In this document: positions 1,664-10,465 of the stretch, one piece after another
Position numbering within the stretch: the stretch's first letter is position 1
Layout of the letters: every line of letters starts with the position of its first letter
DNA from: Oikopleura dioica
Lineage: Eukaryota; Animalia; Chordata
Assembly (NCBI GenBank): GCA_907165135.1
Contig: OU015568.1
Span: forward strand, 7,068,001 to 7,132,000
Direction of reading: 5' to 3'
DNA length: 64,000 nucleotides
Notes under the pieces: generated by a model
What the model saw: only the letters and a program-made list of their open reading frames with translations
What the model was told of the DNA's origin: nothing
Database searches by the model: none
Made by a program: the position numbers and the translations under genes

Positions 1664-1904
1664 TCTATTTCCCGAAACAAATAATTAAAGAAACTAACGA
1701 TTTTCGAATTTAAATCCTATGGACCATAGGCTATGGTTGGAAAGATAAAGCCCGTTTTTATTCTAAAGACTTTTAATAAATAAGTTTGCAAACTTGGATG
1801 CAGAGGGAGAGATCAAGAGAGTGGTTTAGAAAAAGATAAACCAGAATATATATTTGACAGTAGCTTTTCTTTTTAACTCTAACAGAAAGAGGGAAGAGAA
1901 GAAG

Positions 1905-7556: not shown

Positions 7557-8878
7557 TTAGTTCTGTGGCTTGCCGGCGATAAGTAGCCAGTGGTTATTCC
7601 ATTTTTCATGTTTCTGGTTTCTGTGCCATTGTTTAATTGTTGCTGCATTGACTTCCTTTTCCACTCCAAATGGCGTGCGCACGATTTTTTCTGCCGCACA
7701 AAGGGCCTAAAATATCATCAGAAGGCGAAGAACTGTGAGTGACTGTACCTGACCGGTAAGACAATGCTTGATAATGAGTGACGTTCCATGGGGTACTGGA
7801 GTGTCTTCATGCTCGAGTCGTAGACTGGGATCGAATGATTCTATTACCCAGAGATTTTTAGATGACTGCTCCGTGGAGAGGAACACAATCTGACTGGCTG
7901 AGCTTCTGCTTGATGCCACAATACGGATATGTTCTGAAATAAAGGCATGAATTGAGCTATCTTAGACCCAACGGGTTAAAAACTAACCTGAATTAAGACA
8001 ATGTTTCGGTGAGATGACGGACTCGATTCGGAAGCGTTGACCATATCGTAGAGGTTTACCGTTCAAAGATTCATCTTGAGGTCGAATGACGAACGTATTC
8101 CTGGAAAAAAGGGATGAGTCTCTAGAACACCCGCTGTGCATTTTGTTTACCTGGCTACTGGCGTCAACTTATCGCTGGCGGAGAGGGTTCCGTATTCTTT
8201 ATCCTCTGCATACACTGATAAGACTTTTTCTTGGTTCGGGGCAGCGCCTGTGTTCATAATCATTACTGTGTCTCCGAAGTGGATATGTCCGTCTTTGCTC
8301 TCGCTCAGCGCTACTGGCGCTTGATAAACGTCCGCCAGTTTCGCTCGTGTCTGGATGAGAAGCTGGCCGTTAGCTTTTCTCTCCAAAAAATCTGAATAAA
8401 AGCATTGGCAAAAAAGAAGAAGCTAATAACTTAATAACTCAATCTCTGCCTTCATTCGAAATTGTCCACTCTAGGTGAGAGACTGTTTTTTCCTGTTTTT
8501 GAACTTTCATTTAAAATCTGTACTTAGGGCTGACGAAGGTCCACTGAGACCGAAACGCGTCCCAAAAATAAATTTCAATCATCATTCATGAGAGGTCAAC
8601 ACCGACAATCTAATAACTTAAGTCAAAATTATGAGCATTATTCTGAATTTTTTATTCATCAATTTCGCTCTTTTCTAAAATTAAACCCTTGAAACTTACC
8701 GTTGAGCAGGTCTTCTTCGAGGCAAATGTCTTCATTCCAATTGCCGACTCGAACTTGTGGGTTGTAGGTTCTACAGCCCGGTTCGGGCGCCCCAGATGCC
8801 AATCCACTCATATTCAATCGACTAGACGAAAAATTAAAACTGACGATTTTTTCAAAATCATCCCTGACAACAGCCCAT
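7557..8878 (-). CDS. CFAP161: Cilia- and flagella-associated protein 161; first exon tentative
   Basis: RTYNPQVRVGNWNEDICLEEDLLNDFLERKANGQLLIQ, DGHIHFGDTVM, ARNTFVI, LRYGQ, FDPSLRLEHEDTPVP, IIKHCLTG, RTPFGVEKEV, NHWLLIAG*. Confidence 0.9.
8435..8609 (+). mobile_element. 175-bp non-autonomous insertion with a 12-bp TSD, carrying a hammerhead ribozyme (Penelope pLTR/retrozyme-like)
   Basis: Direct repeat CTAATAACTTAA at 8423-8434 and 8610-8621. It lies in a 308-nt CFAP161 intron, much longer than neighbouring introns. Confidence 0.7.
8525..8566 (+). ncRNA. Minimal type I hammerhead ribozyme motif
   Basis: CTGACGA (8530-8536), stem II GGTC/CACTGA/GACC, GAAA (8552-8555), palindromic helix III ACGCGT, and cleavage triplet GTC (8559-8561). 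Stem I is weak (GG/CC, mismatches, then TT/AA). Confidence 0.7.
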
Positions 8879-8994
8879 GTTCTAGAAAAACTGAATTTTC
8901 GATCACGTGATTTTCAAAAACAACCTACTAAATCACCCTCTAAAATCGCTAAAAAACGCGGTTTCCGGTTGATTTTCTTGTTTTTTCTTTGTAT

Positions 8995-10465
8995 TTATTG
9001 ATCAGGAAGATCTGTACAGTTAGAACCAAGTGCTTGTCTTAAATCTCGCAAGTTGGTAACTCCGATCAAATGAGAAACGACCCCGCCGACGACGAAAATG
9101 TGGAAAATGTTGTGAGAGCATCCTGAAAGAATATCGTTAGACCGAGGTGACCCGTGGAAGAATGTGATTTCAAAGCTAAACTCGTGAGTTTCTTTACCAA
9201 AAAGATCGAATTTTCCGGGGAAATCCGCTTCCGGCTTTTGAGTTGCGTACAGATATGTTCCGAACAAGTATGAGGCCGCCATGATCACGATCCATTTCAG
9301 CTGACATTCCTCCCAGGCGTTTACTACACCAACTCTGAAAGTCGAAATTTGGAAAGTTTCTTCTTCTGGAACATATGTTTACCTGGCACAAGCGTGGAAG
9401 ATCGGAATCATGCTAGACATGGCCAGAGCAATAAAAAGACATGCGCGCACAACGCGGTATTCTGGTGTACTGAATCGTTGCCACTGGGTAAAGACCATCG
9501 TGAATAGTCCAAGGACGGAGAGGCACGAAATGTAGCTGAGCTGGGACTGAGGCATGCAGTAGAAGTTGTAGTAGATCCAGGGAATGAAGCTACCTGAAAA
9601 CTGCTTACATAACTGGCCGTCTTTGACAGATTTACCCATAATGAGAAGAGTGATTCCACAAAAATCGAGCCTTCCAAAAATCGACGAAATCTTCCTTGAA
9701 TGAGCAAGAAAAGTATGAAACAATGCCGAAAGAAATAAACATAACCAGGCGAAGAAAACTGTCGATGAAATGAAAAAAGTATTCAAAATATATATTTTCG
9801 TCATTTTCTCTTGCATTTCAGACCTGACCAAAAAGTCCGATAATCTGTTTTTCTTCGATTTGATTCACGAAGTTTTCTGAAGACAAGGAAGAGTGCGTCA
9901 CGATGAAAACAGCGAAGAAGACCGAGGGCAAGAAGTGCGTCTGAAAATCAGCTTTATTTAACCCAACAGCTCATTTTCTTACCCAAATGTTGATCGTTTC
10001 GTTATGCCATCGGAAACACGAAAGCAAGGAATATTTGAAAGAATGCATCGGCGCTCGGTACCATTTTTGAATGAATTCGTTGTCTTTTTGCCACTCTTCG
10101 AGCTCATCATATTTCACTGGAGAAGAATGAGGAAGGACGTAGCACGGAATTAAAACTTACGTAAACGTAGCCAATCTGTTGGTGCTTCCTCTCGGCTGAA
10201 AAGAGTTAGAATTTCCAGCAGTTAATGCTGTAAGTTCATCTGATTATCCACTAAGGGAAAAAATATCTACGGAAGATCTTACATGTCTATATTTGAGGAT
10301 TCCTCCTGCTCAGCTGACCCAGTCGATTCTTCTATTTCCGGTGAACCATCTCAAGTTGGTTGAATATTTGTCAAAAACTAAAGGTTAATCGGCTTAAAAT
10401 GAATATGCGACCATAATATTCAACCAAACTTCTTCCATCGACGGTGGGCTCCGTTCGCGCAACAT
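8995..10465 (-). CDS. ADIPOR: Adiponectin receptor / PAQR family 7-TM protein
   Basis: EEWQKDNEFI..WYR, SCFRWHNETINIWTH, SALFHT, RLDFCGITLLIMGSFIPWIYYNFYC, PE..FPGKFDLFGCSHNIFHIFVV. Start codon tentative. Confidence 0.9.

Follow-up and report, generated by a model that had tools for sequence, protein, structure and literature searches.

A minimal hammerhead motif in a probable 5'-truncated Penelope-like element copy within a CFAP161 intron of Oikopleura dioica

Introduction

Penelope-like elements (PLEs) of the EN+ type are defined by a reverse transcriptase (RT) followed by a C-terminal GIY-YIG nuclease (PMC8557442, PMC11167929). In their genomic copies an inverted, 5'-truncated copy adjoins the 5' end, a tail of 30-40 bp is found on one side only, and hammerhead motifs are located in the pseudo-LTRs, or pLTRs (PMC8557442). 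The tail has been attributed to two adjacent internal start sites for reverse transcription, the targets are AT-rich, and the element's protein both cuts and extends the two DNA strands; the hammerhead is assisted by that protein and is dispensable for insertion in vitro (PMC11167929). Metazoan PLE hammerheads have an extra nucleotide after position 9, a G10.1-C11.1 pair and a palindromic helix III, with a helix I of 2 bp in D. virilis (PMC4209133). Minimal hammerheads of the PLE type are a kind of motif that has been well described since 2014. PLEs are on record in O. dioica (PMC5240408); our literature search found no report of PLE hammerheads in larvacean tunicates.

Here we analyze a 175-bp insert in an O. 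dioica intron. It lies in a stretch of 64 kb, which was analyzed as a whole and is referred to as the window. The insert is very probably a severely 5'-truncated and recently inserted copy of an EN+ PLE, that is, of an element encoding an RT and then a C-terminal GIY-YIG nuclease. The window copy itself is a dead-on-arrival fragment, an ordinary feature of a well-described kind.

Results

The insert and its host intron

The features of the locus are as follows (positions are those of the window).

8392-8699, minus strand: predicted CFAP161 intron harboring the insert (flanking exon pieces matched by Pfam, GT/AG ends, reading frame)
8423-8434, no strand: left copy of the target-site duplication (TSD), CTAATAACTTAA; the empty-site joints skip the insert and one repeat
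8435-8438, plus strand: filler TAAC, four bases at the 5' junction without counterpart in the parent element
8439-8609, plus strand, which is the sense strand: 5'-truncated copy of the PLE 3' UTR, 171 nt (identity to the L031 arm)
8527-8565, plus strand: minimal type I hammerhead motif (full core, covariation, covariance-model matches)
8528-8529 with 8562-8563, plus strand: helix I, two G-C pairs, with GGG at 8527-8529
8530-8536, plus strand: core CUGACGA, followed by an extra A at 8537
8538-8541 with 8548-8551, plus strand: helix II GGUC/GACC with loop CACUGA and the G10.1-C11.1 pair
8552-8555, plus strand: GAAA of the hammerhead core
8555-8560, plus strand: palindromic helix III ACGCGU, which could pair between two copies
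8561, plus strand: C17, with predicted cleavage between 8561 and 8562 (core alignment)
8567-8572, plus strand: AATAAA poly(A) signal, kept in nearly all subfamilies, 12 nt 5' of the short 3' end
8585-8609, plus strand: tail of 25-27 nt between the proximal and distal element 3' ends (at one end only in composites)
8610-8621, no strand: right copy of the TSD, CTAATAACTTAA (sequence and empty-site joints)

The sequence-only reading of this locus had described a full hammerhead core with the palindrome ACGCGT, a T-rich tract upstream of it, and an AATAAA after C8561; the letters are as it described them. It had also placed the insert antisense in a CFAP161 intron, and this assignment holds. The host gene runs on the minus strand, where three ORF pieces (8147-8386, 7983-8141 and 7707-7919) are collinear with Pfam PF24569. 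On that strand an exon is predicted to end at 8700, followed by the donor GTAAGT (GT at 8699-8698), and the predicted acceptor TTCAG (AG at 8393-8392) leads into the next exon from 8391; the frame is preserved across the splice. The intron measures 308 nt with the insert and 121 nt in the empty allele. One raw-read RNA run (X24) gave zero reads over 7900-9000, a result that bears neither on expression nor on splicing or cleavage.

The element-derived part of the insert spans 8439-8609, or extends to 8611 (173 nt), since the CT at 8610-8611 is common to the element end and the duplication; for this reason the TSD is given as 10-12 bp. In the genome search, matches to other copies begin at base 5 of the 175-bp query, and in full-length copies the letters ...ATGTTT precede TCAATCTC where the window copy has TAAC.

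Empty sites were found in contigs of two other public DNA runs, with joints at 8422->8610 (X4) and 8425->8613 (X3); the species label of run X3 is that of the run which best matches the window, and X4 bears another label. Both joints skip exactly 187 bp, corresponding to the 175-bp insert and 12 bp of repeat. This exact skip shows that the insertion is recent and polymorphic and that the duplication is a true TSD; the 12-bp direct repeat claimed around the insert, and the empty alleles proposed as a check on it, are thus both present. In each of the three DNA runs, positions 8455-8602 are covered roughly 10 to 75 times as deeply as the flanks. This value is summed contig depth rather than copy number, and it is consistent with a multi-copy family in the genomes of these three runs too. 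Two further alleles of the intron were seen, one with a joint at 8400->8646 (X4) and one with a joint at 8431->8655 and 24 other letters in between (X3); these extra joints indicate that the CFAP161 intron is structurally polymorphic.

Conservation and covariation of the hammerhead motif

Positions 8530-8561 contain C3 U4 G5 A6 N7 G8 A9, G12 A13 A14, the A15.1-U16.1 pair and H17, as found in type I hammerheads. Among 20 distinct copies, the core varies only at the free positions N7 (C/U) and H17 (C/A), and the ACGCGU palindrome is unchanged in all copies. A search of the genome with the pattern CTGANGA-N(10-26)-GAAACGCGT returned 46 occurrences, against two for the reversed control, and a covariance model built from the 20 distinct copies gave 56 genome matches. 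The copies with a hammerhead, at least 56 in the genome, fall into four subfamilies, and across these the specified helices I and II are paired in 84-86% of cells (86% for helix II). Four base pairs in helices I and II show changes on both sides among the 20 distinct copies: in helix II these include U-A to C-G and C-G to A-U, and in helix I the first pair changes from G-C to A-U. The covariation score exceeds those of all 500 shuffles and of every slid control; as the copies are mutually related, this is support rather than proof. With the core, the covariation and the 56 model matches, the earlier call of a minimal type I hammerhead with a palindromic helix III is borne out. Helix I comprises 2 bp in the window subfamily, the weak stem I that had been pointed out before, against 3-5 bp in the sister subfamilies. 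The window subfamily has 19 identical motifs in copies that are 99-100% identical, and is the youngest of the four.

Rfam cmscan over the whole window gave no hammerhead match at the gathering score. An Infernal search with the Rfam hammerhead models, which had been suggested along with the first description of the motif, also failed to produce a match at E<=10, either in 8380-8680 or at five sister loci that include better-stemmed copies. Such a result is expected, since helix III is not closed in minimal PLE motifs; the D. virilis variant is missed even by a relaxed minimal descriptor (PMC4209133). The Rfam scans returned only chance matches of snoRNA, lncRNA and miRNA-like type. C/D-box snoRNA-like matches (Afu_191 and TtnuCD28, E=1.4-4.6) lie far under their gathering scores at 8577-8667 on the minus strand, across the element end and the intron, and are most likely due to chance, driven by the words TGATGA and CTGA. 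Folded on its own, the motif takes an alternative hairpin rather than the hammerhead as its minimum-energy structure. A two-strand fold pairs the whole motifs together; the double hammerhead is a crossing structure and lies beyond folding of this type.

A parent element with RT and GIY-YIG coding capacity

At 2.86 kb, L031 is the longest element in the subfamily of the window copy, and window positions 8439-8609 show 100% identity to the final 171-173 nt of its tail-bearing arm. L031 has an ORF of 614 aa with an RT domain (Pfam RVT_1); among its homologues, RVT_1 occurs together with PF28514 and PF26215. Just downstream of the RT, in another frame, is a GIY-YIG signature (GVVY...YQGET...R..EH). 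The Pfam GIY-YIG model did not score this L031 frame directly, and the nuclease was therefore linked through homologues: the frame aligns to the Pfam-positive GIY-YIG domains of the RT homologues P0011 (E=6e-6) and P0007 (E=1e-7), and is 75% identical to residues 524-680 of P0001, a relative (63-75% identical) in which RT and GIY-YIG are joined in a single ORF of 680 aa. L031 itself has a frame break at 1666-1701 (minus strand) that separates the RT ORF from the GIY-YIG frame, in what is otherwise a young copy with 100% identical arms.

A search of solved structures with the RT gave only insignificant matches to retron and group II intron RTs (E>0.2). Atlas neighbors of the RT are animal RT clusters, some of them with GIY-YIG. 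Assignment to the PLEs is made here on the combination of an RT with a C-terminal GIY-YIG nuclease, together with the architecture of the copies.

Copies and architecture of the family

The genome in which copies were sought (G000, O. dioica) comprises 64.3 Mb in 19 pieces, and our census covered 40 loci. The 175-bp query found at least 43 related stretches, many of them in inverted, outward-facing pairs 0.5-3 kb apart; the copy-number search that had been proposed for this insert thus leads to a multi-copy family and to L031 with its RT and GIY-YIG frames. Inverted partner arms lie inside one TSD at no fewer than 15 loci, and in four composite copies the arms measure 157-220 nt and are 96-100% complementary. 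Coding arms end at variable truncation points, single fragments retain 77-350 nt, and across all copies the retained length lies between 77 nt and the complete 2.86 kb. The TSDs are 10-14 bp long and AT-rich.

Two discrete 3' ends recur in the family. The short one, ...CAATCATCA, corresponds to window position 8584, and the long one, 25-27 nt further on, to 8609-8611. Composites bear this extra tail of 25-27 nt at one end only, usually on the short arm. An anole-like arrangement, in which the tail would be the permuted 5' end of a coding copy, was considered and rejected for L031, as the 97 nt upstream of its ORF are unlike the tail.

The inner start of the short inverted arm is discrete as well: in 13 of 15 composites it falls 7-15 nt past the nuclease stop, within a window of 9 nt, and this applies across four subfamilies that are 74-100% identical, including some with no more than 74-80% identity to each other. 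The boundary was observed at L031 (1002-1221 and 3625-3844) and also at L004, L005, L006, L026-L030, L037 and L046, and it is flanked by two hairpins (TGTAATGGAGC/GCTCCATTACA and AATTCGCTTTC/GAAAGCGAATT). The module of about 240 nt delimited in this way stands alone at two loci, L027 and L022. The arrangement suggests either that a discrete 3'-UTR RNA exists, or that RT stops or switches template at the flanking hairpins, and it would also fit a scheme in which both nicked strands prime synthesis, each on a template 3' region of its own. At L044 (389-604), two inverted hammerhead modules in back-to-back position make up a perfect hairpin some 200 nt long, which also attracts a spurious weak match to the plant miRNA precursor model MIR2670 (E=0.68).

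Head-to-tail arrays and direct tandem pLTRs are both missing among the 46 pattern occurrences, and close pairs are all inverted and outward-facing. The insert is therefore not a retrozyme, a kind of element named in the sequence-only reading and for which head-to-tail monomers were looked for; the window, over its 64 kb, holds a single copy.

Discussion

Origin of the insert

The 100% identity to an arm of L031, the coding capacity of that element, the one-sided tail and the exact empty site make a truncated EN+ PLE copy the reading that we hold with high confidence. The priming steps that we infer for its insertion would run as follows. The element's nuclease would nick the AT-rich intron target with a stagger of 10-12 bp, and reverse transcription would use the nicked DNA as primer and begin at the more distal of the two internal start sites, as the presence of the 25-27-nt tail suggests. 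It would halt after about 171 nt; the cDNA end would then be joined through the four filler bases, and gap repair would yield the direct repeat. The varied start points among single copies fit 5' truncation during target-primed reverse transcription.

The Penelope-like link drawn in the sequence-only reading has therefore stood up, through a 100% identical parent with RT and GIY-YIG, but the solo pLTR that it suggested has not, since the copy starts at an arbitrary internal point of the 3' UTR and retains 171 of its roughly 240 nt. It is extremely improbable that the insert is a solo pLTR produced when terminal repeats recombined, or half of a MITE or foldback DNA transposon. Composites with perfect terminal inverted repeats of 216-220 bp do give a superficial resemblance to a DNA transposon, but the parent codes for RT and GIY-YIG and for no transposase, the ends are asymmetric with a tail on one side, the TSDs differ in length (10-14 bp) and the coding arms are variably truncated. 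As for the solo pLTR, recombination of inverted repeats cannot leave a solo repeat, and the window copy begins inside the repeat rather than at its boundary; the start lies 65-70 nt into this repeat, whose length is about 240 nt (the start is at R2 position 125 and the boundary at 56). A less remote alternative, though still an unlikely one, is that the insert is a truncated copy not of the full-length coding RNA but of a discrete non-coding mini-element, whose RNA of about 235-245 nt would consist of the PLE 3' UTR only and would be mobilized in trans by the PLE protein, in the manner of a SINE or of an animal retrozyme precursor. The "tiny ribozyme-bearing retroelement" of the sequence-only reading keeps some life in this form, because a discrete 3'-UTR module of about 235-245 nt is seen repeatedly as the inverted arm and in two cases by itself (L027 and L022), with the short-arm start of 13 of the 15 composites, from four subfamilies, confined to 9 nt; in addition, a 2026 preprint derives animal retrozymes from PLE pLTRs (10.64898/2026.07.22.740005). 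The window copy, however, falls short of this module by some 65 nt at its start, which makes it a truncated copy on both readings. Some of the other single copies reach into the nuclease ORF (L011, with 346 nt, L038 and L042), tandem arrays are not found among the 46 pattern occurrences, and a strong RT stop or a template switch at the boundary hairpins would give the same pattern.

A bolder proposal concerns the inverted arm, which might be a discrete 3'-UTR module of about 240 nt brought in by a dimeric RNP; this would hold a full-length RNA and a short 3'-UTR RNA together through the palindromic helix III and prime both at staggered nicks. We consider this improbable. Were it true, the hammerhead would be mainly a site of RNA dimerization, the inverted insertions of PLEs would be accounted for, and the window copy would represent an abortive product with a single arm.

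Activity and role of the hammerhead

On the preferred reading of a truncated PLE copy, the hammerhead is a passenger in the window insert. The 3' UTR of the parent element contains the cleavage site at a distance of 23 nt from the short 3' end and 48-50 nt from the long one. Since sequence past this site is kept in every genomic copy, the RNA which was reverse-transcribed must have been uncleaved at C17. An uncleaved template agrees with the finding that cleavage needs the element's protein and can be dispensed with for insertion in vitro (PMC11167929). Helix III of a monomer would be limited to a single A-U pair closing a 4-nt loop, against a possible 6 bp between two copies. By analogy with the described PLE motifs, the hammerhead probably works only as a dimer or with the help of the element's protein. 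There is no second copy within the 64-kb window, and the nearest of the related stretches (at least 43) lies on the same piece at a distance of about 0.9 Mb. Self-cleavage at the locus appears unlikely given the 2-bp helix I, the lack of a nearby partner copy and the antisense orientation of the motif relative to the host transcript, and the solitary intronic copy is most likely silent.

It is also conceivable, if rather doubtful, that the motif has been kept for a role other than cleavage, such as binding of protein or pairing of template RNAs through the palindrome, with cleavage being vestigial. The subfamily that is both youngest and most successful, with 19 identical motifs and copies of 99-100% identity, makes do with a helix I of only 2 bp, the 23-50 nt past the cleavage site are kept in all copies, implying that the copied RNA is uncleaved, insertion in vitro proceeds independently of cleavage (PMC11167929), and activity in vitro is low (PMC4209133). 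Against this, no catalytic core nucleotide varies among the 20 distinct copies, the covariation of helices I and II is of the kind that a hammerhead demands, and the anole PLE motif does cleave when protein is present (PMC11167929).

Significance

As a single locus the insert is of little weight, and the growth of the intron from 121 to 308 nt does not show an effect on CFAP161. The family is of wider use: a larvacean tunicate is added to the hosts of PLE-type minimal hammerheads, and the copies that are 99-100% identical, together with the presence/absence polymorphism, show that this PLE family was active very recently. PLEs are described as almost absent from the 64.3-Mb Okinawa O. dioica assembly, in which 44% of repeats are unclassified (PMC8008620). 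The genome studied here, likewise of 64.3 Mb, holds at least 56 PLE hammerhead arms, with some copies 99-100% identical; the PLE hammerhead family may sit among the unclassified repeats of that assembly. Being small and clean (some 50-60 arms, with exact ends, tails and duplications), the family is a convenient natural data set for studies of the mechanism of PLE insertion.

Comparison with known systems

The motif resembles the minimal hammerheads of metazoan PLEs (PMC4209133), especially that of D. virilis Penelope, in its type I topology, its full core and the extra nucleotide between A9 and G10.1, and also in the G10.1-C11.1 pair, the short palindromic helix III, the 2-bp helix I (as in D. 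virilis) and the location in a terminal repeat. Helix II differs, with 4 bp here and 5 bp, or 5 bp with a bulge, in the sister subfamilies, against 6-8 bp in the metazoan sets (PMC4209133), and the host is a larvacean tunicate.

The element shares with canonical EN+ PLEs (Penelope/Poseidon, Neptune, Nematis) the RT with C-terminal GIY-YIG, the 5' truncation and inverted truncated partner, the one-sided tail between two 3' end points, the AT-rich targets and the hammerhead in the repeat. It departs from them in having no direct tandem pLTRs among 46 occurrences, a tail of 25-27 nt instead of 30-40, and an inverted arm whose discrete inner boundary lies just past the stop codon; the hammerhead is in the 3' UTR, whereas in the anole element it is at the junction of pLTR and ORF. 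L1 twin priming, reportedly described by Ostertag and Kazazian in 2001, is said to give inverted structures within one TSD through priming from both nicked strands. Here, in contrast, both arms carry the element's 3' end, which calls for two template 3' regions and not one internally primed RNA. Animal non-LTR retrozymes (PMC7229834; 10.64898/2026.07.22.740005) are similar in being short, non-coding hammerhead sequences related to PLE repeats; they form head-to-tail arrays that give circular RNAs, whereas the window holds one truncated, TSD-flanked copy and the pairs found in the genome are inverted.
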